A DNA stretch of 63,292 bases, the filler included, from Bigelowiella natans CCMP2755 (lineage: Eukaryota > Protista > Cercozoa), in assembly GCA_000320545.1 (NCBI GenBank). It is 9 parts of 9 records of this genome, joined end to end, with 100 filler letters (N's around TTAATTAATTAA, not from the genome) between each part and the next. Parts side by side here need not be neighbours in the genome. Positions count along the whole stretch, not along the records: positions 19,837 to 34,909 come from ADNK01000661.1; 8 more parts are not named here. One strand, 5' to 3'. How positions within the stretch are numbered: position 1 is the first letter of the stretch; every line of letters begins with the position of its first letter. The notes beneath the pieces are model-generated. The model was given only the letters and a program-made list of their open reading frames with translations. It made no database searches and was not told the DNA's origin. The translations under genes were made by a program, and so were the position numbers. Shown here piece by piece: positions 58 through 35,145 of the stretch.

Positions 58-288
58 GTCATCCCCAAGCACTTCGATGACTTCGAGGAGAATTGGGGCG
101 AGATCCGCGCCGCTTTCTTTGAGAGCACCTGGAGGTAGTTGAAAAGGCGTGCGAGGCGCTTAATTCAAAAACATCCGGGGGGGAGATCAGCGGAGGAGTA
201 ACAGGAGGACCTTTCGATTCGAACGGGAGACTCCCAACCAAACAGTTTGTTCAGATGTACGATAAGGTCTATCAGTTGTGTACAAAAG
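58..288 (+). CDS. Possible cullin N-terminal fragment (frameshifted near 120)
   Basis: Frame 1 gives DFEENWGEIRAAFF. Frame 3 gives EHLEVVEK...KQFVQMYDKVYQLCTK, followed by a GT donor at 289. Both resemble the first cullin repeat (FEE.W..I / Y..VY..CT). No downstream cullin exons seen. Confidence 0.35.
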
Positions 289-366
289 GTACGCAACCGC
301 TAACACATAGCACTTTGAGGGGATGACCCCCACAGTCATTAGCCCTCCAGCTCCACACCATCATTT

Positions 367-398
<32 letters not shown>

Positions 399-411
399 TA
401 TCGCTCCGCAG

Positions 412-514
412 AAATTCGGAGAATCGCGCGGCCTCCCTGTGAAAGTGCAGGTGTTGCGGGCCGGGCATGAAAGCATACAACTGGAGATCGAAACCCCAAG
501 AGAAGGTGCAAAAT

Positions 515-546
<32 letters not shown>

Positions 547-953
547 CTACTACTACTACTACTACTACTACAGGGAAAAAAAAAGACCGAGGGAAGAAGA
601 TTCTTGCGGAAAATCAAAGAAAGTAGACGAAGGGCGGTGGGAATTCCGCCGACCTTCCGCCGATATTCCGCCGACATTCTTTCTTTCTCACCAGCGCTGT
701 GATGCTCACTCCGTGATCGATTTGTTGACCTTCGGCGTAATGCAGGTGGGCTAGGTTTGGGGCTGCGGCCGCGGATACTGAGAGAATACGCCAAGCGAAC
801 CCCCCCCTCAGAAGCGCTGGCACGGACCAATGCGGGGTTTATCCGGCTGTGTAATTTGATCCGGTCGCAGTTCCTGGGGGCCATTGAACAGCCGAGCGAG
901 GCTCGTCTCTCGGGGCCTGTTGGTACTAGTGATGATTATGATGTTTATATGCA

Positions 954-989
<36 letters not shown>

Positions 990-1423
990 ACATTTATTGC
1001 TATTTAGTGGTATATTTGATAGCAAGCGGCGCACACCGAGCGAGATGCACCGCAGGATATGCGATGTGAGACCATGCCAATTCGATGCGTGCAGGTATTG
1101 CGAAGATGGGGAACGAATACGCGGAGGCGGGTGGGTTGTACGGCGTGCTCCTGTTCGCCGCTCTGCTGAACATCAACCTAGCGGCAGTCAATGCGCTGCC
1201 AATCCCCGGGCTCGACGGCGGGCAGCTTGCCTTCCTGCTCATCGAGACGGCGGCTGGCAAGCGTCTGAACCGGAAACTTCTGGCCGGGATCAACGTCGCG
1301 TTCCAGCTCTCCCTGTTTGCGCTGGCGCTCAGCGTGTTTGGGAGCGAGATTGGGAAGTCGCTCGGCGACCTTATCGCTGCAAGCTCCGCAATGGAGGGTG
1401 GCTCGGGTGTAGGCGGACGGTAG
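412..1423 (+). CDS. Membrane zinc metalloprotease, RseP/site-2 protease (M50) family, 3' exons (412-505, 746-922, 1095-1423)
   Basis: Spliced at GT-AG sites it reads PVKVQVLRAG...(PDZ end)...LSGPVGIAK...LNINLAAVNALPIPGLDGGQL, containing the NxxPxxxLDG motif of M50 proteases. The HExxH N-terminus is not in the window. Confidence 0.85.
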
Positions 1424-1564
1424 TAGTACGAGGACTTAGAAACAGCCGCGCTTATGCTGTTTCTGCTCGTCTACTTCCCGTAGTCATGTTAAGGGTTATA
1501 TGGGAATCATATTGATGTACAGTCTTTACAAGTGTAAAAATAACACAAACACACACACATATAG

Positions 1565-1619
<55 letters not shown>

Positions 1620-1758
1620 GATATATGTGTGTGTGTGTGTGTGTGTTTTTTACTCATTTAGAGTGTGTGTGTGTGTCTATTCCACAAATAAACCATCTCG
1701 TACGTGGGCGGGGGGGGGAGGGCGAGAGAGCCCTGTCTAATGTGTGCGCATGTATATT

Positions 1759-1806
<48 letters not shown>

Positions 1807-4800
1807 ACCTTGCGATGGTGTGTGGTCACTATCACTTGCTTCTGATAGAGTCATTACAGTCCACAAATGCTAGCACCATTTCGCCACCTGTTCTCGATCG
1901 AGTCGTCCTTTTGTTAGGTCACGACGTTATAAAACAAAAGAAATAGCGCGATCGACAACACATTCATGCAGCATGGATGGTGGGTGCGGCTTATTGTACA
2001 TGCATGTACATGTGTACATTGTGCATGTAAGCGTGCATTTTTTCATGCAACGTGCGTGTGTGCACATATGCATGGTCGCGTGTACGATTCGGCACGTGAT
2101 GTGAGCACAAGTAGCTCGGGGCCATGATGCGAGGTAGCGCATCGATGCGATTACAGACGATGTGACAGACGCGCATCAGCATTATTATTCGCATTGCATG
2201 TGATACAAAGCGGCGTGAAGTTTATCTTCTCGTCGCAGTGTGTATATGTAGTGGCATTACAATGGCATCGCTTGTAGCGGTCTAGCGTTGTTTTTGCCTT
2301 GAGAGCATGCGATGCCATGGGTCCTGATGAATTGCATATATTGCATATCTGTGACACCATATCTAGATATACATGATGATGTGTTTCTATTTTATGTTCC
2401 GTTTCTTTAGCGAAGAGAGCGCGTCGTATTATACAGAAGTCAGCAATAAAATGCGATGTCACACCAATATGCTGCTCGCGTGTACTCGCAATATGACAAC
2501 AGCGACTTGCGCAGCAGTAGCTGCACAAAGCTAGAAAGGCACAGCACATCATTGCAAGAATAAGCACCTTCTCCGCTTATATTCGTGTCGTACATGCAAT
2601 AAGCAAGCAAGACGACTGCGAATCTACCTACGCTATAGGCGTGGACGCGCAAACACAATCAGTGTGCATTGCATACATGTGCCGTACGTATGCTGCTATA
2701 GCGCACGTGTGAATGATGTGATTACTGGAGCCTATCACGAAACACAACATTTGGCGCATGTGTAAGACATGAGAAGCTATATAGCAGCGGCGCACATCAT
2801 CCTCGCATGCCATTCACCTCGGTAACGGCCTCGGCACTGGCAACCTCATATCCTCTTTACGTAAATCTCAACGTTATTTAGTTGCAGCAAACGGCGGGCC
2901 TGCTTCTTCCGCTTGGCGTCATTCTCCGTCAATTCGCCGTCGCCAGCCCTTCTACCTGCCCCAGCACGGAGCTCTACCTCATCAGGACGATGTGCCGCTG
3001 CAGAGGCAGGAGAGACCCCGAACTCCACGCGCGCCGCCGCCGACGAGTGGGGCACCTTCGAGTCGACCCGCAGGAAATGGCTGGGATAAAATAAACACCA
3101 GCGATGAGAAATTGCTCCCGGTCATAAATGCCCCCAAACAACAAGAGAACTAGCGCTTATACCTCATGCTTTCTTCCGAGGCGCTGTCCAGCGCCGTTGG
3201 ACGTATGGCCTTGAGCCAGACATATCTTCCATCGACCTTGCAGTACGCCGTGACGGCTTGCAAACGAGAGGCGGCGGCCATTGAAGCAGCCTCCGAATAG
3301 AGAAGCTGAAGAGGCAGCGCAGTGGCATGTCAGTTAGCACAGTTAGGAGAGGGTTGAACGGTTCATTCTCCTCCGCTCCCTCCCTGTCTCTCCTCAAAAT
3401 GAATCTCGGGGAATATCGACTCCTTTCGCTCACGATCGTAGATTTTATAAAAAAAGATCCCCGGTTATGGCAAATCGGGTTTATGATATTCTTGGAAAAA
3501 CCCCTTTCACTACCTCGGCCTTGATGTTCAAATAAGAATGCTCTGGTAGATTCGTTATCCTATAAATGAAGGGGGCGGGGGATTCGGTTTATTCAAATAC
3601 AAGACAATGAAACACCACCGCACACACTAAAGAGCCTGTTCAAAATATTTGCTTGATTGCCAAAATCCCAAGACTTTAATAGCGAAAAGCACATTGTACA
3701 ATCGCACAGCGCAGCGGCCACAAAACGACTGCAAAGCCCACACATCGGCAAACGTTACGTTCTTTCCGGGCCTTCGTCGCTGTCAAATCCATAGAAGTGC
3801 TTCTGCAGTACCCAGTCAGATCTACTACGATGACCAGAAGATACTTCGAGGAACGACTGGGGGGGAGGAGCCTTTTGCACATCGGAAGATAGAGATAACA
3901 TAGATTCAGCATGATGCTTTTTATCTTACGGGTAAAAACTCAATCTGATTAACATCGTCATAAAGCAAGAGCCTCCAGCCCATCCCGCCATCTATTTTTG
4001 TTATGGGGACATGCATTCACGCACCGAGGTGTATATCACTTCTCCTGTTACGTTAAGTTCTCCACGAATCTCCTAATGAATATACATTTCTTCGTAAAAT
4101 GACAATGGTAGTAATAGTGACTGTATGTGATAGCGATTAGAACAAATGTTGGCTGTTGATCCGCGTGCGGTTTTCTGCCGCATTGGAGTCAGAAACACGT
4201 TTGATGTTACACGGTATTACGTCGTCTTATAACGCACGGCAGTGAGCCCATCAAGCCGAATAATGAAATGTATGAAATCGTGTAAGTAGTAGTTATTCAG
4301 CTCTTCTATCATTTAGTGCTCACAATAGCTTTGTGTTTGCCAGGCCCTTCAATATTAGCGACACTGATGCCTTGCGAGGCGATGGAAAGGCCGGAATTTC
4401 TCATCGAATCCGCGGATACTGTTTCCGACGAAGAGAACTTCTGTAAAGGTTATAGATCATGAGCACGTGTACGAATGTTTGACGTGGTTTCGCTGTTATC
4501 ATAGTCAGCGCAAATGAGTCCATGCTGATTACCGTAGACTGGATTTGGCCAGCTTGCGCGTCAGCTCCAACGACGCTGAGCGATGTAGTTGAATACAGCG
4601 CCGGCACCTCTAAGTCATTCGCAAATTTAAGAACTGAGCGACTTTCCGCGGATAGCGAGAGTACACCGAGAATAACCACTGCTTGCATAATCACTGGCAA
4701 GGCAATGTGCCTGCTAACAGCAGGTCTCGCTTTTGTTCCCGCAATTATTTGTGGTTCCAGGAGGGGGGGGGGGCAGACGAACTCGAAATTTAAAATTTCG

Positions 4801-4951
4801 AACTGCCCGAATTCGCGAAAAGATAAAATCTAAAAAAATCCCTGAAATGCCCTTCATTTACGTAAATAACTCGGTACATCGGCTTGATAGAACTCAAAAT
4901 TCCCACTGTTGTCACGATGAGCAAATGGCATGATTTTGCACGGGTCGACTA

Positions 4952-5660
4952 ACCGGGAACGCTGCCAGAGATTCGCTCATTCGCAATGCTCCACTCTTGG
5001 TTGCGTCTTCGCACGCTGCCAAGTGTCTTGCAAGCACTTTGGAAGTGCAGTTTGTCATCATTGTTCATCGTTCATCGTTCATTGCTCTGCTGCAAATCAT
5101 TGTTCACTGTTGCAAACGCTTGTGAGACGGATGTGCATCGTCACACACATCCATGTGGTTCTTGCGCACGCAGTCCGTCTAGCAGTTTTGTTGCGTGCAT
5201 CGATCAATGCCCAGTTCAAATTTCAGTGTTCAGTGCTGCCAACGCCGCGTGCGTTCTTTCGATTCCTGGCTTTGAGAGTCAAGGCGACGGTGGGAACCAA
5301 CTCCATCAAGCTAGCGAGGCAGCGGGTGGGCGGCATTTTGCGCGTGTGTGTTTTGCCTGGTTTCGCCGGAGACAGACCTGATTGCACGATCGCGATGAGC
5401 AGTTCACAGGTCTGGAGGTGTTTTGAATCAGACTCAGTTCAACAATCACTTGATCATCTTCCTCCGCTTGCTTGCCAGCTTGCCCAGCTAGCCAGCGGCT
5501 TTCCAGCACTGAACAAATGCAACTGAAGCACTCTGTGTGGGCGGGGAAAACAGTGAGTGTGCGGGCTAGCTAGCTAGCGGGCTCGAAAAAAGAAGCTCTT
5601 GAGCATCCACCATCAAGGGCAAAGCAGCGCACGTTCACTCATTGCATCGTCTCTGATCCT
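4952..5660. other. TpA-depleted (hypermutated) island 1
   Basis: By eye the only TA dinucleotides are six CTAG (5179, 5311, 5488 and the GCTAGCTAGCTAGC at about 5565). A partly depleted, CTAG-rich flank runs to about 6062. Confidence 0.85.
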
Positions 5661-19331: not shown

Positions 19332-20538
19332 CGGTCAAATCGAAAGATACAAGCAACACACACGGAGGGAGGGCGATTACACAGGCGTCTAGGAAATGAC
19401 CCGGAGCGACAGGCGAAAAGTAAGTAGAGGGTTTTTGGGGAGAATAGAATGATGCGCACAACCAATGATCCCCGCCCCCCCTCTCCCCCCACCCTTCTCT
19501 ACAATCGCCTCTCTGCCTACCTTAGATGAAGCTGTTGGAAGGGGGGGAGAAGCCAGGGCAAATTCCTCAAGCACCTCCCCATCGGAAGCCGAGAGGGAAT
19601 AATTGGAGGGATAACCCAGAATCTACCGTGAGAAATAAGGGGGGGGGGGTGGGGGGGGGGGGATGTTTGGGAGGGTGAATAATTTGTTTGCCAGTCTCTC
19701 GACGGCATCAACTCTAGGGAGGGAGGGCGGGGAATANNNNNNNNNNNNNNNNNNNNNNNNNNNNNNNNNNNNNNNNNNNNTTAATTAATTAANNNNNNNN
19801 NNNNNNNNNNNNNNNNNNNNNNNNNNNNNNNNNNNNCTGTGTGTGTGTGTGTGTGTGTGTGCGAGCGCGCGCTTATGTACTGAGGTTATACACATAGACT
19901 CGAAGCCTAAATCACCGTCGCAATCAGGCACGGCGTGACGTTCCGTCTCCAAGTTCTCTATCTGATTGCGGGGTCAGTGAGCTCTGCTGCATCATCCCCC
20001 ATGAAAACGAAGGGAGCAATCATGCCTTTCAACCGACTACTCCTAAACCGCACTAGATACGCCTATTCGGTCTCCCCTTCCCCACCCGCTCTGTGACATG
20101 TTCTTGTCGCAGGAGACGTCGTCAATCGGCCGTTTTCATCCGTTTGAACATGCCGATTTTCTTAAGCCTGTTGTGACGACGACGACGACGACGACGATGA
20201 TGATATGATGATAGTGATGATAATGATGATGGAGCGCACTCTTGATTAGGAATATCTCCTCTGCATGGTCTAATGTCGCAGTGGACGCACTGGTAGCGAA
20301 TGCTCTAGAGTTCTTACCGAAGCCACGTTCTCGCTTAGAAAACACCCATGCAATGCGCGCGCAGTACACGCAAAAGCGATACACTTCTATCATCGTTCTT
20401 CGAGGGTGCAAGCACAGTGCTGCCATCTGATTCTCAGCACATCTCACTGCTACATAAACGATGTTGTCCTTTTGGCTGTATTAGGTTGTCGAGAGGAGTC
20501 AGGAAAAAAGCGCCCTAGTTGCAGCAAGGTAGACCAAG

Positions 20539-20587
<49 letters not shown>

Positions 20588-21170
20588 TTCTCTCGCCTCG
20601 TGTCTGCGGACCACACGGCGGATGTGTCTATTTGTTGTCTCGGTGAGGCATGCACGCACGCGCGTCATTTCTGGACGTGAAAATGCCGAACATTGAGTCC
20701 GCGATATTCGTTGATTTCTTCCAAGAAAATTTTAATTAATCTTTTCTTCTTCTCCTTCATCTTCTTTTTTCTTTTTTTTTGGTTCAGGCTGCAAGCGTTT
20801 ACGAAGTCGGCCTATGGTTTGTCCTTCTTTTTGTTCAGCTTATCTCCTGTTGCATCGTCTCTGCCGATATTTCGCGTCGTGTGGAGCTGTATTCAGTCAC
20901 TCATGGAAGTTTTCAATAGTTTCTGAGAATCAAAATGTGAACTTTGTGCCGCATCGGAATCATTCGTTAGCAGCTATAAGTTATTTCCTTATTAAGAAAT
21001 GCCCGCAAAGAAGGCATGTATCTCCGACCAATTTCAGTGAGATTGACAGCTCAACCTTTCTACTAAGGCTTAGGGATGGTGATCTCAGATGTCGCATTTG
21101 GCTTCATCATTGATTGGTATGTGGACGATATCTCCCTTTAAATATTTTACTTGTTCAACCGTGGATCTGT

Positions 21171-21210
<40 letters not shown>

Positions 21211-21230
21211 ATTTGTGTAGGTCTCTCTTT

Positions 21231-21294
<64 letters not shown>

Positions 21295-21826
21295 GGAGAC
21301 ATGTCGTCTCGCGATGTCAAATATTGTCCATTCTGCAACAAGGTATCATCCACGCTATTGCTACTACATCTTCGCAAGCTTCCAAGTATCGACAGCGTTT
21401 TCAGCGCTGGTGAGTATGGCTGCCACTGCGACTCCGAACACCAAACCGTTTTATTTCTTATATCAACAACAACAACAACAACAATTAGTATTCCGTGCAC
21501 AAGGGAAATTGCATGAACAACAATGCAACAATCGATTTCAGTTTGGTAATAATGTGCCAGATTCTGGACGAGCCGAGATGTGAAAGCAGCTCCGATGCCG
21601 TGACGAGAAACGTCCGTTAAAGATCGAAGGGAGGGGGGGGAGGGGATGAATGGAAAGAATAAAAGTTAACCCAAAGGAGTTCTAAAATGCCCCTTCTCAG
21701 TGTCGCTGATGCTTATGCCCGATGATCCGTCGTAGACAAATGGATGCGTGTGTGAGGAGCCCTGCGTTTCTAAGGTGTGGTTGGGGAAAACGCCCAGATC
21801 TCAGTCGTTTGCTTTGTGTTTGCCAG

Positions 21827-21947
21827 GCCTTCATCACCGTATATCGAACGCTTAAGCACCCGAAGATCCTATACCCGGTCGCCATGATGATGCCGAGGAA
21901 GCGGCTTATTTTACCTAGTTGCCCGTGCCTTGTTGCAGGCATAGTGT

Positions 21948-21999
<52 letters not shown>

Positions 22000-23088
22000 T
22001 ACTGTCTTTTGACTCGACATACTCCGCCATATCCAAAGGTCCTTATTCTCACCGCGCTTCTCTCCATGCCAATAGGTGATATTATGAATGTATCTTCTCT
22101 CTCTCTCTCCCTCTCCCTCTCCCTCTCCCTCTTCCTCTCGCCTGATAAAAGTGCTCGTCTGTGCCGACGAACACATGATTTTTCGCCGGCATTTTCTGCG
22201 CATCCTAACTCATCAGCATCGGAGCCGCTTCGCATGTACTTCGTCGAGGAGCTGAAGTTCTCCGCCAGCTTTCTCGGCGTCATGGTCCGTGCATTGATCA
22301 CCCAACCACGCTGTGATAGCATGCCCGTTGCACAACACCAGCGCCGCAGCGAAGCAATGAAATTTCCTATGCTTCACTTTGCTTCGCAGGACGCAATGTG
22401 CACGGTGGCGGGGGCGATAGGGCTCATTGTGTACGCTGGCACGATAGCAGAGAGCCCAATGCAAGGTTGCAGTTACGATTTATCGGCCTCGTGTTAAAAA
22501 TGCATATATTCTCCGACAATGCGAACGGGGGAAAGAGAGGGGAGGGCGGAGTGCGGGGGGGGAGGGTGGGAAGAGGGTATAAAAGAAAAAGAAAAGCTGG
22601 TGTTTGTCTGACTGGCATTTGTCTTCAGGAGTGTTCTTCTGGTGCACGATTGTAGTGATAATATGCAACCTGTGGCTCGTCCTCTTGGTAAGCCAACAAA
22701 AGACGAAGAGGAAGAAGATGATGATGAACATGAAACATCTCATCACGCTTTGCGCGAGGCAGGGCTAGGAGTGGTATCCTGTGTGCTGGCAGAGAGGGTT
22801 TCTACTGTCCCTCTTCATCACCTTATACATGCGTTGTTTGTGCATGGCAAGCTGCGATGATGTTGGAATCCATTGTTTTCCGCCGCATTCTCCAGGTCAC
22901 CGGCGTCAGTAGAGAGTTGGGGATCGATGATAAGGTAACGACTCGTCACGTATTTTCGTTCGGCCAGGGTCTGTCTTTTAAGTTCACTCCACATGTGCAT
23001 CGTTGTTACGCCCTAGGTGTTCGTCTTCTCGGACAAAATGGTGAATAACGTGGTAGCCGCGATCTGCTCCAACACCATTTACACGTAC

Positions 23089-23171
<83 letters not shown>

Positions 23172-23600
23172 TCGCGAAAGCAGAGAGCTCGGCGTTCCCT
23201 TTCATTAGCTACTAAGATGAGATGACGAAATAGTGTGTGATGCGATTGGTTGTCCTGACGACGACTTCGCCGTCGTCGCCCACTGCTTCTCCTAGATACG
23301 CTGCTTGCATCTGCCCTCGAGGCGTGGAAGGCATGACGTTCGCAGCCATGACTGGTACGTCGTCTTATCTCGCTGCTGCATTGAGAAATCCCTCAGGAAA
23401 TGATATTAGCGGAGATAGTTGTCGTGACCTGCGAATATCCATAATATATATGTAACCTCAGCGCCTCAGCTCAGCATTTTCATATGCCAGCTTTAGTTTT
23501 TGGGATACACATTATGTTCCGTTGTTATATCCGGTGCAGGTTTATTCAATCTTGGTGGAGCTTTCAGTGCGCTAATGAGCACCAGCCTCATCGACATGTG
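21827..23600 (+). CDS. Folate-biopterin transporter (BT1, MFS), internal exons
   Basis: Small exons encode YRTLKHPKILYP, MYFVEELKFSASFLGVM, VTGVSRELGIDDK, VFVFSD, YAACICPRGVEGMTFAAM and LFNLGGAFS, collinear with BT1-family motifs. Confidence 0.75.
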
Positions 23601-23953
23601 CGTGCACACTGAGCTGATGCTGATGATAATGCGGAGGATCGACCATCATGGACACCATCGTGATTAGTGCTTAGACAGAGAATAAGGGGGGGGGAGCAAA
23701 CCTTCGGAAACAAACGGATGATGAGTTAATACCCCCTTCCCTCCCCCCTCTTTTCTTGCGCTAATCCTGCAGCTTTGACGTACATTGCGATGAGGACGCA
23801 GGGGGGAAGCTGTCCAACTGTAGGTTTGGAAACCTGTGGCATTTAGTAGCTGTCACGGCGCTCTCGAACGTGGTAAGTGAGGTAGGGTTGAAGTTGGTAA
23901 AATACGGGAAAAAGAGTGTGAATTGTTAAGATTTGAGACTATGAATACATGAA

Positions 23954-24001
<48 letters not shown>

Positions 24002-25403
24002 GTATAATGTGTGCGTGTGTGTGCGCGTGTGCTTTCATAAAAATGTACACATGTGAAGTATATCATATCGCTTCTTCCCCAATGACATAAAATAGACTGA
24101 AATGTAATCCTCGCGTAAAACATACCCACACACAATGCACACAAAGTCGAAGGTTTCTATGCCACGTGTATATCACGAATATCTTTCATTTGTCCCTTAA
24201 AGGTGCCTCTGCTTTTTATCTCGTGGGTTCCGAAGTACGGCAACTTTTGCTCAGCATAGCTTCATAATTCCCCATCCATTTTGTTCAACAGAATCATGGG
24301 ATTCATTCGACAAATCTTTCCCAATTTTATACTATATCTTTTGTTGAGAGTCACTCCATATACGAGGTCTTGATTCTTTCGCTGAGACTTGATTTGGATT
24401 CGAATCTGTGGTTTTGGTGTGATACACAGCGCCCCTCCAAAGGCCTCAGATGTAATTGTCTGTGAGGAAGTGGTGCAGGATGATATCGCCGCTGTCCCAC
24501 ATAAGACTGGAAAGAGGCGAACTGTATCTATGCCACATGTCGTGCGGAATAATTAGTGGGTCGACAAGTATCCCACGCCTCGACAGCTTGCTCGCAATGC
24601 GTAGCAGCCAGTGAGCATGTTGAATCAAACGCAGGTCCACAAATGTCTACCTAGATGCATGTGCTTGCAAATTTTAGATATTATAAATAAAAAGACGGAT
24701 ATCATGTCAGCCTCTTAGGGCGACTGCTGAAATGATGTAATCGTTTCATTACACATCGCGTCTCATCACACGTTAGCCTATCATTCTTGATGATCATATT
24801 TAAACGATGGCAAAGGTATGAATATTAGAAATGTTATGTAACATGCAGTTGAGTGTTGATGGCCTGCCTTGACGAGATATATGTAGTAACAGCAGCTGCA
24901 TGAAACACGAATGCAACGAATAGCATCACTGTGCGGCCTGATGCTCAACCAGTCCGCGCAGACGCCATACGCACAAGAAAAATGCTGGAAATGGTAAAAT
25001 GCGGCCTCTTTTTGCACATATTTATTTATTCCTGCCATGTTTAACCCTCACACATAGCTGCATATATATGACGGCCATCCATGTGCGATGTAGCATAGCA
25101 GCGAAGTTGACATTTCAAAATTTAACGAAGCATCTCAAAAAAATGGATTTCATACGATGAAAAGGATGGGATTGAAATGCGTCCAAAACGTATTTGAGAT
25201 CATGGGAAAGTTTCGTTCCTGCAGCGACTTTTATTTCTTCAGCTCTAGCTATGGAAGCTCGGGAGCCGTGATTGTCATCAGCGAGGCCATTTCTTCACGC
25301 AGATTCAATGTGTATCTACAAGTGCACACACGCAAATGCCTCACAAAAATTGTTCATATAAGTGCAGCAGTGAATACGGAAACATGTACAAACCAACAAA
25401 CAG

Positions 25404-25441
<38 letters not shown>

Positions 25442-25455
25442 AAGGCAAACAATGG

Positions 25456-25499
<44 letters not shown>

Positions 25500-25845
25500 G
25501 AGATTACGTATCATATTCCGCAGCAATCGGCTGAAAGGCACGTCGAGACACAACATTCTTTTCTGCGGGAGTGACGATTTCCTTCTTTTCCTCTGGTACT
25601 GCATCGATATCACCAACGTCATCATCATCACCATCATTGTCCTTCTCTCCTTCAACTGCACCATGGTCCTCTCCATCATTGATTCCAAGCTTACGGTCGC
25701 TCTTGAGGGCTAAACCCTCTCCGCCATCAGGGGGAATGCTGCGATCTAGAGGAGCGCTTGTTGAAGATATTGCCGCTGAATCACAGCAGGCGTATTGAGG
25801 CGATATCATTTGTGCAAGGGAATATAGCAGCACTTAGTATCGAAT

Positions 25846-25883
<38 letters not shown>

Positions 25884-27475
25884 CCAAGCCCGTGTGAGCG
25901 TTTTACATTTTTCATGTGAGTATATTATTTTCCTGTTGGCGTTGTTTTCTTTCTTTTTAATATAAATTCATGATCCGACCTCCACCCGCCTCCGTCTCTT
26001 CTTCTTCAAGTTCCGGCTGAAACAACATTACATACGGGAGTTGGATATGTGGATCTACTTCCCAAAGTGAAAACGGGGCATTTCTCGCGCAGGTGCTCAG
26101 TGATTCATTCTACCTCGCTCATGGATATCTGCAGAGCTTGTTTTTCTGCCAAAACACAGTTGCGATTATACAGTAGCCACACTACTCAAAAGGGTTTTTT
26201 GTCCCAATACATCGTGTGTATGTTACATTTACATCATGTGACACAAGAGAATGTGTACGGAATGGGTGGGGTGGGAGCTGTTACTACGTTCACGCATATC
26301 TGCAGCAATACCGGCCTCACTTGTACCCTGAAGGAAATAAGATACGTTCATTTGGGAAGGGGGGGGGGGGGGGGGTTCCAATGAAAAGCAATAAATACAC
26401 GCAGATAATGAGCATTTTCACCAGAAACAAATCCATGCTATGTCCCTACTCGCTTACTACCGTGGAGTCGATGTTCGCTTGTATCATTTGTTCCTGGGTG
26501 AATTGTTGGCAGGAGATGTTTAAAATTTGGAAGCGTTAGGAGGAGAATGAGTGATATTTTGCACCATTTGTCTTCCGAGACTGCTGTGCTTGCTGTCATC
26601 GCGAAGGTAGACTTCCCTGGGAACGAGAGTCCTTGTAGTCTCTACTGCTTTCGAAGCCATCTGATGATAGATGATAAGGAGGCGGGGCTCGTGTGCATTG
26701 CTACATATTACAGGTCTAAACATGTGTGACAATCAGCTAATAATTCGAAAGCAAAATCATTCATTCATCACGCATCGTCGCCTTTACCTCAGCCTTCGCC
26801 TTGAAGCTGTCTCGCATTGCCTGTGATTATGGCACAAAGCTCAGATTTCACCGTTGTGGTCGCAGGGAGATGGATGCTTCATTGCTATTTCAATGAGTTC
26901 ACTAATGAGAGAAGAAGGGAAGAAGACTTTCCCACCCTGAGCTCTTCCATGTTCTCCACCAGCCTCGTGTGGAGATCGGAGTAGAAGCCTTGGACATTCA
27001 TGCGAGCGGGCATCGTTCGCATTCCCGAGACCGACACATCAGCCTACACAAGCACCAGATGAATCGAATGGACTGAAGACGCCATGTGCAAAGTGAAACC
27101 TTAGCAGCTTCCATTTTCCCCCTTCCTGTCGGACGTGCGATCGGGGATGCTCCTCCTCTGTTGGCGGGAAGTGGTTTGGATTGGAACCCTCCCGGGATTG
27201 ATGTCATGAATCCCGGATGATGTGGGAATTCATGTAGTCCAATTAATCGTCCGATGGGATTCATTTGTCCGATGGGACGACAACCTCAATTTCACCTCAA
27301 CGACTCCGAAGAGTTCGTTGTTCTGAGCTTGTTTTGTCAGTTGCCATCACTTGATTTCACCTCAAAATGCAGGTCAATTCATGGTGAAAGACATCTTTTG
27401 TGTGCACAAATTCAAATTTTTTCGGTCAAAAAATTTGAATTCTGACAACGCTCCCCCCTCACCACCTTTTTTGTC

Positions 27476-28222
27476 ATGCGAAAAAGCCACCGTGTGGGGC
27501 GATCACGGGGCAGTGTGAACAAAGAAAAGCACGCACACGACTTGTCAGTCCTTGAGGAGTCGTGTGGGAAGACAAGGGATGGTCTGGCGGGTCTGAGTCA
27601 AACGTTCAAAAATGAACGCAAGGCGTTGAAATGCGTCCGTGTGCGTCCATCGTCGGGGAGCCAGTTCCTGACCCCGTCGCCAATGTCTGCGCCCTCTGCT
27701 TCTGCCCCTGCATCGACTGCTTCGTCTTCAAGTTGTTCCACGTGCGATTCCACGTCAAAAAGACTGACAGAGGTCATTGGTCCGCTTGACGTCGATGGTG
27801 ACCGCATCGGCAGCAAGCTCCGTCGTTCCACCAGAAAATCCAATTCCTCTGCATCATCGGTCAGTTCGTCGTCGTCTAGTGCTTCTTCCCGCACAAGTGT
27901 GAGTGTGCTCGAGGACGATGTTGTTGCTGTGGTGGGGTGCAATGCAATGTTGTCCACAAGAAAGGCAGCTGTCCGAGGTCCCACTTCGAACAGGTTCGGA
28001 ACAAGTGCTGGCAAAAGGGAAGTGTCCAGCAAGGAGTTGAATCTGCCCGATCCTCGAGATTTGACTGCACCGGCCAAAAAAAGGACAGCGGTGGAAGCAA
28101 TCCGCAAATGCACGCCCCGCAGGAAGGCATCTGTGATGAATCAAGTGGCTGCGTGGGCTGGTGTGAGTGCAAGAAGTGCTGGACGATGGTGGAAGACGTC
28201 TTCTCGTTTCACGAATTGGTGA
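27476..28222 (+). pseudogene. Possible DNA-transposon remnant with helix-turn-helix
   Basis: C-terminal NQVAAWAGVSARSAGRWWK resembles transposase HTH (IA..LGVS..TV.RW). It lies near the island edge after a 14-bp hairpin. Confidence 0.3.
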
Positions 28223-28819
28223 AACAATCACTTTTGGCGGCTCTGCGGCCACAGGCATGGCACAGTGATGCAGCGCGTCGTTGAAACCGTTCGCATGCAA
28301 AACGGCCGCAGCCGGGCCATCGTCCTTGATTTCGTGGTCAAGGCAGGCTGCGTGCTTCTGAACGGGTGGCACTGAAGCGCAAGCTTGTTGGGGCGATGTG
28401 TCTGAGTGTCGGTGTGCCTCGTCGCCGTCGTCGTGCGTGGGCCTTGCTCGTGGAGTGGGCTGTGTGACCACTTCTTGAAGTGTCTCTGCTGGTGTCGTGC
28501 TTGTCGGTTGTTTGTCTTCGTTGTTCTCGAGGGTTGGTCTGCTGTTGTTGTCAACTTTTGTCATCGTCAGTCTCTCGGTCCTTTTTGGTTTTCTTTGCTT
28601 TTGTTTGGTTTTCTGTGGTTTTGGGATTTTTGTGGTTTGGGGTTTTTGTTCTTTCCTTGTTGCTTGAAGTCTTCTGTCTGTTGGGATTTTGAGTTCTGTC
28701 CCTCGAGGCCTCGAAGTGTTGTGTGCGGGTGGCGAAGTGATGAGAGCAAACTGGGAGCGCACAAAGGGAACGCATGCGCAGAACTCAACTCCAGAGCTCA
28801 CCCTGGGCACTGGTTGCCA

Positions 28820-30895
28820 GTCGAAGGAAAGTTCTGGAACTTCCTGCCCTGGGTGCTGCTCGGAAAAAAGCGCACTCTTTGTGCACGTGCGCTCCGGTGC
28901 GACTTGTGTTGCCGTGTGCGCCTTGGCTTGCGCTTCTCGATGCTCCTTCGCTTTCGCTGTTGTCGTTGCTGCATCGCTGCCGCGCTCCACGCTGCACGAC
29001 AATCGAGACATTGCTGCCATGCATTGCGTGTTGAGAAAGAAGTTGACATGCACGCTGACATCGTTGCTGCGTGCTGCGATGGTGGCGCCTGCAAGGAGCT
29101 GCGCCACAGGCTCTCCCCTTTCCTTCTTCCCTTGTCTCATTGAAGGTGCTCTTTCTTGACGCGCTTGGTGGCTCGGGAGCCCTCGGAGCAGCAAGAAGAC
29201 TGGTCCTCCCACAAGGCTTCTTGGAAGTCCTCAGACCCAACCAAGAGAGGTGACCATGAAGTGGTTGGCGACGGCGTTGGAGGACAAGGAGAGTCGTGCC
29301 GTTGTCGCTTCAGTGGAGGAGGCCTCGGGGACTTTGCTTCTTCTTGGGGTGGCGGGAATTGTTCGAAGACTGGAGGGCCTGGGAACTCTTTGTCGTCAGC
29401 TTGTTCGAGGTCGAAAGCAATGAAGTCGTCCTTGAAGTCATCGTTGTCCACGAACTCACCTTCTTCGGAAGACTGAGAGGGCGTGCAGCCTGCAGACCCT
29501 TCACTCATTGCACCGCAGAGAGTCGGCGGCAGCAGGAGAACCCCACACTTCCCAGGGTGTGGTTCGAAGTTGCAGGCTGGCTCCAAGCACCGGCAGTGGA
29601 ACTTGAACGTGAGGACGATGTCACGCCCATCGAGTTCGCGAAAACTTGCTTCCGTTGCACGCAACGTGCCAACAGGAAGCTCCGCGACTTTCCCCTCGAT
29701 GATTTCGATGAGCGTGGCCAGCGAAGAAGCACGAGTCCTCAAGTCGATGCTGGCTTGAGCCAAGACTGGGTCGTGCTGCCATGGCGCTGTGAGAAGGGCG
29801 TTGCCCACAGGAGCAGACCTCTCCACCAGAGTGATGGTCAAAGTTGCAGCTGGAGGTGTTTCCAGAGGCCGTTGGTTGCGACGGGAGCACTTGAGCCCAG
29901 CCTTGGCGCGCTCGGAAAGCCCCAAGTCCTTGAAGTCGACCATCGAGTTGAGGAGGAGAAGCGGTTCGGGGTGCCGGTGCACGGCACTCTCGAACACAGT
30001 CACGGCGAACGGAGCAAGCTTGAGTTTCTGGAGGCAGAATTGCTTGGTGGACTGTGCGAAGGACGAAGTCATTGCTGGATTGGCTGGTTGCTCGTTGGAG
30101 GACTTTGGATTGTGATGGGCCGAGTCTCTTGGCAAGTGAAGGGGCTGTGTGCTTCGCAGCAAGCGCGCGTGCAGCGAGCGCATGGTGGGTTCCCTTTGAA
30201 GGGGGTTCTTTTCGGTCAGCGGGTTCCTTGTGCAAGGGGGTTGTTTTGCAGCCCGAAAGAAAGTTCTGAAACTTTCTGCCCTGGGTGCTGCTTGGGAAAA
30301 AGCGTGCTCTTTGCTCTTGCTGTCGTCCTTGCTGCAATCGCTGCGTGGCGCGCCATTGGTGCTGCTTGCCATCGGTGCTGCTTGCCAATCGTGCAAAACG
30401 TTGCTGCCACGCATCGCGTGTTGAGAAAACGACATCGCTCGTTCGAGGGGCTCTGCCCTGGCACGTTTGGAGGCTTGGGACTTCGTGGTGCAAAGAGAAC
30501 AACCCCACAACGCTTCCTGGAATTCCAAACACCCAACGAAAGTGGGCCTCAACTCGGAAGGGTCGCGACGCTGTCGTTTGCGCAGAGGAGGGCGCATCGG
30601 AGACTCAGTCTCTTTTTTGGGCGGAGGAAGTTGCTCGAAAATCGGTGGACCCGGGAACTTGCCGTCGTCAGGTTGTTCGATGTCGAAGGCCAAGAAGTCG
30701 TCCCAGAAGTCGTCGTCGTCCACGAACTCGGGAGACTGAGTGGGCATCAGGAGAGCACGAAGGGCAGGAGGAAGAGACGTTGGCCGGCTGGTCGGTGGAG
30801 GGGGGCTGTGTGTTTCGCAGCAAGCGCGCGTGCAGCGAGCGCACGGTGGGTTCCCTTTGAAGGGGGTCCTGCTGAAAGGGGGTTGTTTTGCAGTC
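28820..30895 (-). repeat. Internally duplicated, mutated coding-like region (ORF 29137-30984)
   Basis: EFVDDDDFWDDFLAFDIEQPDDGKFPGPPIFEQLPPP recurs as EFVDNDDFKDDFIAFDLEQADDKEFPGPPVFEQFPPP about 1.27 kb away. DNA 30141-30250 recurs at 30802-30893. Confidence 0.7.
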
Positions 30896-31558
30896 AGCAC
30901 GCGCGCCACGTGTGAGCGCAGGGAGGGTTCTTTTGTCAGGTTGACGGGCGAAAAAGGTGGGTTGACTCCAGCTGACTGGGTCACTTCCCAAACAGAACGG
31001 GTTCCCGCACGGAGGTGTCAAGGTCAAACAGGTCAAGTGCACGGAAGAACCGGCAGGGGAAACGGCGCACCTTCCACCGGGTTCGACCGTTGTCGCAGAC
31101 TTGCAAAGTGGGGAGGTTTTCATCGTCTTTCGGACAAGCCTTTCGAAAGCTTGTTCAGAGCAGGGCACTGTCGGCCATCGTCAGCTCAAAACGAAGAAGC
31201 AACTCGCCAAGGGACGTCAGCCACCGCTCGCAGGTGCGCAGGTCACACACTCTTCCACCGCTGGCGTCAGAGTGCACTCCCAAGGTGTGCTGTGAGTGCG
31301 GTGGTGCGCAATGCGCCGATCGGGCGGGTGCAGGAGAGGACCCTCAGACGGGAGGCTGCTTGCGTGACCTGAACACAGTTCCCACCGACTCTCTCGATGG
31401 ATTTGCAGGGTGGGAAAGAGGCAGAGAGGGCTGAGCGCAAGCGACTCAAGAACGAGGAGCAGGAGAAAGCAAAAAGGCAAAGTGAGGCACCTCTCCTGCG
31501 CTTGTTCCTTGTTCACTCACTCACACAAAACGTGTGTGATGCAAAGTTCCACGGGCGT

Positions 31559-31720
31559 CAAGTCCTCCTTTTCTTTTTTTTGATGACCTTCGTGTTCTTT
31601 CAACAAGTCCTCCTCCTCTTTTCTTTGATGACCTTCGTGTTCTTTTGGCAAGTCCTCCTCCTCTTTTCTTTGATGACCTTCGCATTCTTTTGATGAATCC
31701 TCCTCCTCTTTTCCTTGACA
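31559..31720. repeat. 45-bp tandem repeat, about 3.5 copies
   Basis: Units start at 31559, 31604, 31649 and 31694 (caagtcctcctcctcttttctttgatgaccttcg...). Confidence 0.9.
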
Positions 31721-31742
31721 GACTTCATCGACGACACCGTCG

Positions 31743-33838
31743 ATGGCCCAACGGCACGTTGGACCGACGAGGTGCGGGAGGAGATCACCGGATTCACACC
31801 CAAAGAAGTTGCTGACACCTGACAAAAAGCGCAGAGCGACGACCATGGCGACAAGTGATTTGCACCGGGAAGGAGCTCCTGACAACAACAACGACACAGG
31901 TGACGACACCTCAGACACAAACGACTTGGTGACCTCACCTGGTGCAGAAGGTGCAAATCAAAATCGCCAACAAAGGAAACAAGAAAGAAAACAATCCCGA
32001 AAACGAAGAGACAAAAAATCAAGGTTGCGACTTGTTCCGGGAGTGAATCACGTCCCTGGCATGCACTGCACGGAAAGTGCAGAGGGACACTCAAATCCAC
32101 GCACTGAAAAACAACAAGAAGAAGAACCTGGCAATGTGACTCACTTTGACAAGTGCATTGGAAAACCAGTGAAGGAACACGAGAAGTGCATTGACGATTG
32201 CAACGAGGTGTGTCACCATCCAAAGAACACGAATCCATCCAAAGTGAACCTCGAAAACGTGCCAAGTGCGTTCGCTGAGGCAATGTCAGGCCCGGAACGT
32301 GAGCAGTGGAACGAGGCAATGAAAAATGAACGTGAAAAACAAAAAAGAAACAATGCACGGACAGCTGTTGAAAGGCCGCGAGACCCGACAACAAACAAGA
32401 AAGTGAAACTCGTTTCCACCAAGTGGGTGTTCAAAAGAGAGGTCAAAGCAGACGGGTCTGTGAGACGCAGAGCCCGCCCAGCATCGCGAGGCTTTGCGCA
32501 GACGGAAGGTGTCGATCACTTCGAAACCTTCGCCCCCACCTTCGCGATGCCAAGCTTTCGACTTTTGCCAGCTGTTGCTTCTGAACACGAACTGCACGTC
32601 AATCACGCAGGTGCAACTGCTGCGTTTTTCCACGGTGACATCGATGCAAGTGTCTGCACCAAGTTGCCTGCTGGCATCTTTGTGGATGGAGATCTTGACG
32701 ACACCTCCAAGCCAAAAGGTCCGTCCCCAAAGTTGCACAAGTCACAACACGGTTCAAAACAGGCGGCACACACACGGCACAAAACACTCATCAAAGTTCT
32801 GCCAACACTTGGATTCAAACAAGCATGCACTGATCCACGTGTGTTGGCAAAACACGTTGACGACTTGCCTGTTGCACTTGGAGTGTGCGTTGACGATGCA
32901 ATTGTTCTCCATGGGTCCTCACACGACCCAGAGTGGTCATTGAAATCAACGTCAAAACACTTTGCTTTCACACACGACGGTGAACTTGCCCTTGCTCTGG
33001 GAATGGAGGTTGGACGCAACAAGGACTTCACCCACGAAGTGGGACAACAAAGATGTGCAAGTGACTTTGTCACGAAGTGCGGGTTGAAAGTGAAGAAAGT
33101 CAAAACACCTCTCGCAAACGTCCCTCTTGACTTTCAAGCCCGTGGTCCTCCTGTCGATTCCACCTGTCACAGACCATTGTCAGGTTCACTGTTGTGTTGT
33201 GCGGTGGGAACCAGACCTGATGTGAGCTTCGCCTGTTCCCGCCCAGCGCAACGCTCGGAGGATCCACGTCAGGTTCACTGGGACCAGCTGGTGCGGGTCC
33301 TGAACCACCTGAACAATGCGATCGATCGTGTCACGTCACACGACAGAACGGGAGAAGGCCTCACAGGGTGTGCCGATGCCGGTTTCGAAACAAGCAAAAC
33401 CGACGGCAAATCCTTCACCGGACGTGTGCCATTTCACTGCGGCTCACCTGTGCTGTGGAGGAGCTCCAAGCAAACAGTCGTCGCCACCAGTGCCGGTGAA
33501 GCGGAACACATGGCACTGTCCCCCCTGTTCAAAGAAACAATGCACGTTGAACAATCGACAAAAAAGTGGGACTCAACGAGAAAGTCCCCACAGCCGTCTT
33601 CGAAGACAGCGAACCGGCCATTGCAATGGCAATGGGCACGGGGCTGTCCAAGAAACCACGGTCTGCAAGGATCTCTCATCGTGACGCAAGGGATTGTGCA
33701 GGTTCAGGGTCGATGAAGTTGGGAAAGGTGTCAGGGAAGTGCAACCCTGCGGACGTCTTTGCCAAACCCCTTTCCCACGACGGTCGTGATGGATGCAGTG
33801 ACCAGTTCCACGGAAAGAAGAGGCACCAATCCGTTTGA
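31743..33838 (+). mobile_element. Ty1/copia retrotransposon pol remnant (RT + RNase H), hypermutated, frameshift near 33560
   Basis: KWVFK, RGFAQTEGVDHFETFAP, HGSKQA, CVDD, TRPDVSFA, GCADA, WRSSKQTVVATSAGEAEH. The second frame gives FEDSEPAI...NPADVFAKPL. No integrase or LTR recognised. Confidence 0.93.
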
Positions 33839-33866
33839 CCGCCCAATCCCTCCTTTGCCCTGCAGC

Positions 33867-33904
33867 TGTGCACGTGTGCACACGTGCACGTGTGTGCATG
33901 CACG
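33867..33904. repeat. Fossil (TA)19 microsatellite converted to TG/CA/CG mosaic
   Basis: 19 consecutive in-phase dinucleotides, each TG, CA or CG. Confidence 0.75.
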
Positions 33905-34117
33905 TCCACTCTGCCTTGAGGGTTCAGGAACACGTGCCTCGTCATCGATGTTCCTGCAAGTGAAAAAAAAAAATGAAAGTTTGCAAGTGATTGAACAACA
34001 ACCACAAAGCTGACGAACCTTCGCTCTGCGGCTTCGTCGTGCAACGAGGAGGGCACCTTGCGTGATCAACACCGTGGTTGGCCGATTCTCAAACAATCGG
34101 CACCACGGTGACCTGCA

Positions 34118-34300
34118 ATTTGCTCAGTCAGCAACGTGTTCGCTTGGTCAGCATCGTGGGTTGCTCGGTCAGGAACGTGTTTGCCTGGTCGGCATCACGG
34201 TTTGCTTGGTCAGGAACACACTTGCCCGATCAGCACCACAGTTTGCTTGATCAGCAACACACTTGCTTGACCAGCGTTGTGGTTTGCTCGATCAGCAACA
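34118..34300. repeat. About 21-bp degenerate tandem repeat, about 9 copies
   Basis: Cores ctcagtcag, cttggtcag, ctcggtcag, cctggtcgg, cttggtcag, cccgatcag, cttgatcag, cttgaccag and ctcgatcag occur at about 20-22 bp spacing. Confidence 0.8.
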
Positions 34301-35145
34301 CGTGCTGCCCTTGCTGACACACGTCCTGACTCTTTTGCTGGGGCCTTGTGTTTGCAAAACACCGTTGAGTCGTGTGTGGTTGGGGAACACACAGAAAATC
34401 GTGAGCCCCCCCCCCCTCCACCGCTCCCTTTCAGTCCAAAGGTGCAGCCATGTGAAGTGTGAAGTGCACCACGTGCAGCCGTTGGCTGGTGCAACGTGCG
34501 TCTTATGTGGGATGGCAACTGGGTATCCGTTTTGATGGATGTGGGAGGGGTGGGAGGAGGAGGACCTGATAAAGTGTATCAAACAGATCGGGGGATGCGA
34601 CATCTTTGCCTTTAACGAGAATCATTATTTAATTCTCTAAATTAAAATATAGGTATACCAATGGCCCCTGCAAGACAATGACATGCAGTGTTCTGTGCGT
34701 CATTGTCTTTCCCAACAACTGTGAATTCTGATCTGTACGCCTCCGATAATGTTGCGACATAAGATAGTAAATGGGCGCTGTTCTCTCTGGGCACAGCGGG
34801 CGAGAACGAGCTCATTTGCGGCTTGGGCGAATTGGTTCTCGTCTTTCCTGGAGAACACTCTCTGACCCCCAACAGCGGATGATGGGGCTCGCATACCCTC
34901 CGTCTCATCNNNNNNNNNNNNNNNNNNNNNNNNNNNNNNNNNNNNNNNNNNNNTTAATTAATTAANNNNNNNNNNNNNNNNNNNNNNNNNNNNNNNNNNN
35001 NNNNNNNNNTAGCAAAGGTGGGGGGGTAAAAGGGGGTCTTTTTCGGAACCCTGTCTCCTCGGGAAAATGGCGCTCCTCACCCTCATAGATGCGTTTAAAC
35101 TCGCGGCCTTGTATTTTTGTGGTGGATGTATTTATATTTATATAA

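Follow-up and report, generated by a model that had tools for sequence, protein, structure and literature searches.

A TA-free island over retrotransposon debris in Bigelowiella natans, probably produced by DNA-level hypermutation at TpA

This study concerns a window of 63,292 nucleotides from Bigelowiella natans CCMP2755 (GenBank assembly GCA_000320545.1), in which nine parts of the assembly are joined end to end, and within it the part derived from ADNK01000661.1 (positions 19,837 to 34,909 of the window). This part carries an open reading frame (ORF) that resembles the pol gene of Ty1/copia retrotransposons and encodes not a single Tyr. A sequence-only reading of this DNA had proposed that all Tyr codons of a copia element had been erased by changes from TAY to CAY or TGY, and had regarded this as a property of the element. 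The absence of Tyr was reproduced, but it turned out to be a by-product of a much larger feature, a 7.26-kb island that has lost the dinucleotide TA and that includes sequence unrelated to copia (Table 1). The island is made up of mobile-element debris. Alongside a truncated copia fragment with reverse transcriptase (RT) and RNase H, this comprises a multi-copy repeat unrelated to copia and two tandem arrays.

Table 1. Features of the TA-free island and its margins (positions along the window; O/E, observed/expected ratio; YpR, pyrimidine-purine dinucleotide)
Feature	Position	Strand	Remarks
TA-free island, 7,259 bp	27245-34503		1 TA against ~255 expected
Sole remaining TA, in CTAG	27877-27878		TAG half-site on both strands
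Left margin, partial TA depletion	26828-27244		TA O/E 0.12 in 26837-27836
Right flank	34504-34909		18 TAs in 406 bp; normal density resumes at once, sharp boundary
657-aa ORF without Tyr	31743-33716	+	residues 1 to ~55 without homology, remainder copia pol
Ty1/copia RT and RNase H homology, in the ORF frame	31911-33554	+	RVT_2 at ~32397-33086
Catalytic YxDD box, now CVDD	32886-32897	+	TGC; Tyr in 86% of homologues
pol C-terminal end, different frame	33560-33811	+	frameshift somewhere in 33554-33560
GC-rich repeat (0.57-0.60) without recognisable protein domain	28800-31650		multi-copy family
Tandem array, 45-nt unit, 3.6 copies	31559-31718		directly upstream of the ORF
Tandem array, 41-nt (2 x 20.5) unit	34119-34301		copy differences mainly transitions at YpR sites

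Concerning the ORF itself, the Tyr content of 0/657 residues contrasts with a median of 3.56% across 154 copia homologues (P ~5e-11). His (5.0%) and Cys (2.7%) are raised in comparison with the homologue medians of 2.5% and 1.8%, and Ile, with a median of 6.0%, is far down at 1.4%. The identity of the ORF is nevertheless clear. The Pfam profile PF07727 (RVT_2) matched residues 219-448 with an E-value of 2.9e-26 and 93 bits, the cut-off being 31.6. A library search with the ORF returned 37,601 matches, the best of which over most of the query, the protein P0006, is 43% identical. Homologues were gathered by exhaustive HMMER search, and 146 of them were aligned to the ORF.

The primary structure of the element was then compared with 73 full-length copia polyproteins by tblastn. 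These matched the two stretches of copia homology listed in Table 1 and nothing else that could be assigned with confidence, a span that corresponds to the final 45-50% of the homologues and comprises RT, RNase H and the C-terminus. The alignment ends at 33811, about 30 residues short of the homologue C-termini, so that RNase H and the end of pol are represented. Neither gag, protease nor integrase was present in the piece, the DNA upstream of 31911 displayed no homology to the 73 full-length homologues, and a search for long direct repeats flanking the copia fragment, as expected of long terminal repeats or target-site duplications, found none. The copia sequence is thus a 5'-truncated and frameshifted fragment, not a complete element. 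Judged from its sequence, the RT is a dead enzyme, as the catalytic YxDD is no longer intact and reads CVDD. The earlier proposal that the element was inactivated by missense changes therefore holds for the loss of the catalytic box, but these changes are not the sole cause, taking into account the truncation and the frameshift. One of the 73 queries gave a further, weak match (E=0.001) at 27002-27142 on the plus strand, to the extreme C-terminus of copia pol. This segment is situated inside the partly TA-depleted left margin and, from this similarity, may represent the end of another copia fragment.

The direction of mutation was addressed by counts at conserved columns of the alignment, using the nearest ordinary homologue, P0006, as a control. 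Eleven columns contain Tyr in at least 60% of the 146 homologues. At these columns the ORF reads H-C-H-C-C-H-C-H-H-C-H (6 His and 5 Cys), and the codons are CAC, TGC or TGT. Among the homologues, 145 of the 146 harbour at most two His, Cys or Arg residues at the same 11 columns, and the usual substitute for Tyr is Phe. All five Tyr replacements singled out in the sequence-only reading were recovered: GVDY to GVDH (residue 259, CAC at 32517; Tyr in 77% of homologues), YGLKQ to HGSKQ (residue 336, CAC at 32748; Tyr in 98%, with Leu338 replaced by Ser, TCA), YVDD to CVDD (residue 382, TGC at 32886), GYADA to GCADA (residue 543, TGT; Tyr in 65%) and EAEY to EAEH (residue 589, CAC; Tyr in 85%). With His or Cys at every one of the 11 conserved columns, the proposed direction from TAY to CAY or TGY was borne out. 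At less conserved Tyr columns, Arg is found twice in the ORF (CGC and CGT).

The same direction is seen at codons for other residues. The replacement of KARLV by RARPA was present as described, at residues 243 (Lys to Arg), 246 (Leu to Pro, CCA) and 247 (Val to Ala, GCA), with the qualification that the change at Lys243 does not lie at a TpA. All three replacements of Leu by Pro have the codon CCA (from CTA), both replacements of Val by Ala have GCA (from GTA), and the replacement of Leu by Ser has TCA (from TTA). Base changes were also inferred for the conserved columns at which the ORF deviates (52 deviations). Here T>C, with 21, and A>G, with 15.7, prevailed over G>A (5) and C>T (1.3).

When the analysis was run a second time, 41 deviations could be assigned unambiguously to a single step; 27 of them were A:T>G:C, and 19 of these 27 occurred at TpA. 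In the control P0006, only 4 of 28 steps were A:T>G:C and none of the 28 was at TpA (Fisher P=6e-6). The deviations from the copia consensus are therefore preferentially explained by codons that once contained TA, as the sequence-only reading had predicted. With regard to the polarity on the coding strand, the steps in TpA context comprised 12 T>C and 7 A>G. The presence of both at TpA on one strand indicates that both strands were hit, which agrees with the earlier observation that His and Cys outcomes both occur. The absence of new stop codons, also pointed out previously, follows from the nature of the changes, as no sense codon can become TAA, TAG or TGA through A>G or T>C.

The extent of TA loss was then examined beyond the ORF. 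From the base composition of the island and the TA observed/expected ratio of the flank (0.69), 255 TAs would be expected between 27245 and 34503, and one is present (Poisson P ~1e-108). The longest run without TA measures 6,627 bp, and the density of TA in the flanks is ~40-50 per kb. TAA, TTA, ATA and GTA do not occur at all in the island, and TAG and CTA occur once each, both in the single remaining CTAG. The GC content is 0.547 in the island and 0.466 in the flanks. The left border is graded, with TA becoming sparse from ~26830 onward, in contrast to the abrupt border on the right. To the left, the TA-free state exceeds the copia homology by ~4.7 kb, and to the right by 0.7 kb. As it reaches past the homology on both sides, it must be a property of the locus and not of the RNA of the element. 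Altogether, TA was turned into CA, TG or CG, on both strands and to saturation, within a bounded domain that extends beyond any single element.

We considered ordinary causes of TA scarcity, including general TA avoidance, biased gene conversion and selection against TA in stop codons or TATA-like signals. Mild avoidance does exist, as the ratio of 0.69 in the flanks indicates, and the GC content is higher inside the island. However, avoidance of this mild kind cannot yield one TA where 255 are expected, biased gene conversion does not discriminate between dinucleotides, and the catalytic and other conserved Tyr residues of the RT have been destroyed, which shows that the changes were not under selection at the protein level. 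We consider these explanations to have a negligible chance of being correct.

Another possibility is editing ahead of integration, with the copia transcript subject to A-to-I editing by an ADAR/ADAT-like enzyme, or the cDNA and other reverse-transcription intermediates to deamination, so that a copy already mutated entered the genome. ADARs prefer a 5' U, and edited copies of retroelements are known in animal genomes. Nevertheless, T>C (12) and A>G (7) are both found on the coding strand, the 7.26-kb TA-free tract includes ~5.4 kb without copia homology, and its borders differ from those of the fragment. In addition, saturation is practically complete, and a gradient of partial depletion leads into the left margin. 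Editing prior to integration is accordingly very improbable.

It was also conceivable that the island reflects an error of assembly or base calling, such as a modified base misread at TA. Words sampled from 26500-34909 were therefore looked for in sequencing runs, and at least 82% of them were present in each of 14 runs of DNA, which belong to 12 studies. Two independent studies also provided contigs that cover 31653-34403 and 31653-33897 and display zero differences to the assembly. As independent runs are identical over the copia part, the sequence is not an artefact, and we give this explanation practically no weight. By contig depth, the copia part is single-copy and yet fully mutated. RNA coverage was near zero, with 19 reads placed from ~16 million records of one RNA-seq run.

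A process with this signature has recently been described in the same species. In a study of mutation-accumulation lines of B. natans, a chlorarachniophyte, two integrated viral regions were found to mutate ~1000-fold faster than the remaining genome, and nearly all of these changes were A>G/T>C at TpA (Mettrop et al. 2026, bioRxiv 10.64898/2026.01.13.699255). The same preprint reports TpA-depleted clusters throughout the genome, called where Rho_TpA is <=0.43 while Rho_CpA+TpG is >=1.52 in at least three consecutive 1-kb windows, and gene models with low TpA that are enriched in reverse-transcriptase and DDE domains, with one PF07727 match among them. The candidate deaminase put forward there is ADAT2-like, and activity on DNA has been reported for amphioxus ADAT2 (as cited in 10.64898/2026.01.13.699255). 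The GC content of the B. natans nuclear genome is given as 0.449 (10.64898/2026.01.13.699255), to which the 0.466 of the flanks comes close. The phenomenon was thus first described in that preprint, and the island is a new, saturated case that contributes detail about its polarity, its context and its end-state.

The island and the viral regions resemble each other in several respects. In both, A:T>G:C changes at TpA yield TpG or CpA on both strands; the affected regions are bounded and derived from foreign DNA; and the region originating from a nucleocytoplasmic large DNA virus is transcriptionally silent, as is the island. TAG is the least-hit half-site in the preprint, and here the sole survivor is CTAG and the survivors in the margin are enriched in TAG. 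Rare T>C changes at ATG occur in both. The differences concern the stage, the target and the kind of evidence. The regions in the preprint are still TA-rich substrates (Rho_TpA >=0.45), whereas the island is an end-state in which the substrate has been exhausted, a stretch of 6.6 kb being entirely without TA. The target is a giant-virus or virophage insert in the former and retrotransposon and repeat debris in the latter, and polarity was deduced from de novo mutations in the former and from conserved Tyr codons here.

Taking these results together, we propose that a host-directed process acting at the DNA level on mobile-element debris explains the island, with a probability of roughly 0.85. 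Through this process, TpG or CpA, and at times CpG, would take the place of nearly every 5'-TpA-3'. In the most likely chemistry, the adenine of TpA would be deaminated on either strand and the resulting inosine then read as G. Tyr codons (TAY) of copia would thereby become codons for His, Cys or Arg, CTA and TTA codons for Leu would become Pro or Ser codons, GTA codons for Val would become Ala codons, and the catalytic YxDD would have been destroyed by the same changes at TpA. TAA and TAG would be removed and new stops would be impossible, so that the island would fill with long meaningless ORFs. We infer that adenine deamination on DNA is the lesion, and the enzyme responsible would be of the ADAT2/TadA type. 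In tRNA, the adenosine deaminated by such enzymes, A34, follows the invariant U33, an arrangement that mimics TpA. Targeting would presumably depend on foreignness or silent chromatin and not on repeat homology.

The chemistry could in principle begin at the other base. The T of TpA, on either strand, might be modified, for example to 5-hydroxymethyluracil (5hmU) by an enzyme of the TET/JBP type, with mispairing or faulty repair then leading to C. A T>C change reads as A>G on the complementary strand, and TpA>CpA/TpG in both polarities is all that the data contain. 5hmU in dinoflagellate DNA reportedly favours TpA and TpC. On the other hand, 5hmU pairs with A and is not known as strongly mutagenic; the sequence offers no positive evidence for a thymine route, and the candidate enzyme of the preprint is a deaminase. 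We therefore consider modification of thymine unlikely, though clearly less so than the explanations dismissed above.

Several observations weigh against the proposal of host-directed hypermutation or limit how far it reaches. Judging from the sequence, adenine deamination is not separable from thymine-directed T>C on the opposite strand. For no part of the island did an unmutated copy come to light, and the former presence of TpA outside the 1.9-kb copia homology would have to be deduced from the absence of TA. The differences between internal repeat copies, of which 85% are transitions, with 55% of these at YpR sites, agree equally with CpG decay and with resolution of TpA. The enrichment of CpA and TpG is modest: in the seven 1-kb windows of 26837-33836, where Rho_TpA is 0-0.12, the symmetrised Rho_CpA+TpG is 1.20-1.48, and most 1-kb windows lie under the threshold of 1.52 used in the preprint, with the reservation that our window phase and rho formula may differ from those of its authors. 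Finally, the depletion of ApT and the high GC content between 28 and 31.4 kb are only partly explained. The symmetrised rho of ApT is 0.35-0.58 in the island (27837-33836) and ~1.0-1.1 in the flanks, the most depleted ApT trinucleotide being ATG/CAT. Loss through neighbouring TpA, that is in ATA and TAT, accounts for just part of this depletion, which would agree with the rare hits at ATG among the de novo mutations of B. natans.

Two attempts to obtain a further test of direction from the repeats were abandoned. The internal-repeat differences were dropped for this purpose, as CpG decay predicts an identical pattern, and the paralogues of the repeat were ruled out as an unmutated outgroup, as they are TA-free as well.

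The sequence context of the changes was examined at the sites that survived and at those hit outside TpA. Nine TAs are present in 26800-27900, including the one at 27877. TAG makes up 8 of their 18 half-sites, compared with 17% in the flank (P ~0.006), and none of the nine is RTAY (R, purine; Y, pyrimidine). In the copia fragment, five of the seven A:T>G:C steps outside TpA are at ApT (ATG three times, GAT twice). A hand tally of Table S2 of the preprint, counted on the strand carrying the A, gave TAT 67, TAA 67, TAC 52 and TAG 20, and its only non-TpA T>C hits were ATG (three) and ATT (one).

A second case was found in a metagenome. The contig NODE_14058 of ENA ERZ4903317 (L001; 1-5349) contains a nearly full-length but different copia element, 35% identical, with two Tyr-poor genes at 227-3037 (5/937 residues) and 3062-5035 (2/658 residues). 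At 10 of the 11 conserved Tyr columns, one of its proteins (P0056) carries His or Cys, in a pattern unlike that of the island ORF, and 17 of 19 A:T>G:C steps are at TpA. In this contig 140 TAs remain, and none is RTAY (P ~5e-26 at the flank frequency). The surviving half-sites are TAG (42%), TAA (39%), TAC (14%) and TAT (5%), which suggests an order of susceptibility of TAT>TAC>TAA>TAG. The contig seems to represent a similar process that went part of the way to completion, independently of the island. A rule of TAY being far more susceptible than TAR, which the contig would imply, was not assumed for the island, as the de novo hits in B. natans are equal at TAA and TAT; just the weakness of TAG is common to both.

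The contig that encodes the control P0006 (L002; ENA ERZ23491790, 1-1688) was also considered as a candidate for hypermutation and rejected. Its TA O/E is 0.33, and TAT/ATA half-sites are absent among its 36 TAs. However, Tyr is kept, mostly as CTAC, and deviations of the TpA type do not occur. Its TA pattern is probably a matter of codon usage rather than hypermutation.

These comparisons raise the possibility of a general defence that acts over whole domains, saturates retrotransposon debris without requiring repeats, and operates in at least one other, uncultured eukaryote, and that would thus be more than a peculiarity of two viral inserts in a single culture; the hierarchy of half-sites and the minor activity at ApT/ATG would fit a single-strand DNA adenine deaminase of the TadA/ADAT type. 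We advance this wider view tentatively, and consider its chances to be somewhat below even.

Among known systems, the closest in form is repeat-induced point mutation (RIP) of fungi. Both act on DNA, are specific for a dinucleotide, introduce strand-symmetric transitions into mobile elements, and affect a bounded tract, with RIP able to leak into adjoining DNA. RIP converts C to T at CpA, which generates TpA, increases AT content and creates many stop codons, and it requires duplicated sequence and a sexual cycle. In the island the polarity is reversed, with TpA destroyed, GC raised and stops removed; the copia part is single-copy, and the process in B. natans is active in asexual lines. APOBEC3 proteins likewise cause a context-specific hypermutation of the deaminase type that inactivates retroelements and leaves genomic fossils. 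They differ in that C is deaminated on the minus-strand cDNA prior to integration, resulting in G>A on one strand, whereas the island displays A:T>G:C on both strands and reaches beyond the element. ADAR and TadA/ADAT2/3, including the adenine base editors derived from TadA, share the A>G outcome, and ADAR also the preference for a 5' U, but their natural substrates are RNA, and activity on DNA is known for engineered TadA.

The island can therefore be viewed as a mirror image of fungal RIP, left by a eukaryotic process that would mutate A:T to G:C at TpA in foreign DNA. It displays an end-state absent from the still-mutating regions of the preprint, with TA gone and all Tyr codons converted, and the conserved Tyr codons of an RT provide proof of the direction of mutation without an outgroup. 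The surviving TAs together with the hits outside TpA constitute a context fingerprint (TAG spared, ATG secondary) that a candidate DNA adenine deaminase should reproduce. As the island would mostly miss the CpA+TpG filter of >=1.52, saturated islands, in particular GC-richer ones, may escape a combined TpA and CpA+TpG filter, and estimates of how far the process extends may be too low.

There is also a consequence for annotation. The stop codons left in the island are TGA and a single TAG, and the count of TAA is 0. Since TAA and TAG are gone and new stops are not possible, long meaningless ORFs have arisen on both strands, which are a trap for gene predictors. In six frames, stretches that stay open for 100 codons or more number 34 in the island (7,004 codons in total) and 19 (2,511 codons) in a left flank of equal length. 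A Pfam search of 14 other ORFs of the island gave zero matches, and a homologue search with one of 615 residues (29137-30984, minus strand) found nothing. The 4.5 kb left of the copia fragment is devoid of Pfam matches and of protein homologues in these searches. The non-copia ORFs are probably by-products of the loss of stop codons.

As for the remaining contents, the GC-rich repeat at 28800-31650 has internal direct repeats ~1.3-1.4 kb apart. Summed contig depth over ~28.9-31.65 kb is several-fold and variant contigs exist, which identifies it as a member of a multi-copy family. Among its paralogues, TA is created at just 1 of 40 variant sites. Reads of the family reveal another arrangement, with a joint from 30313 back to 28910 that has 28 other letters in between, and with 79 other letters in place of 31272-31277. 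Contigs with 90-97% identity to the repeat are present in putative RNA runs. Outside the island, the left flank at 20540-25882 was without a convincing protein-coding ORF, and it contains many compound dinucleotide microsatellites of the types (CT)n(GT)n, (AC)n(GA)n and (AT)n.

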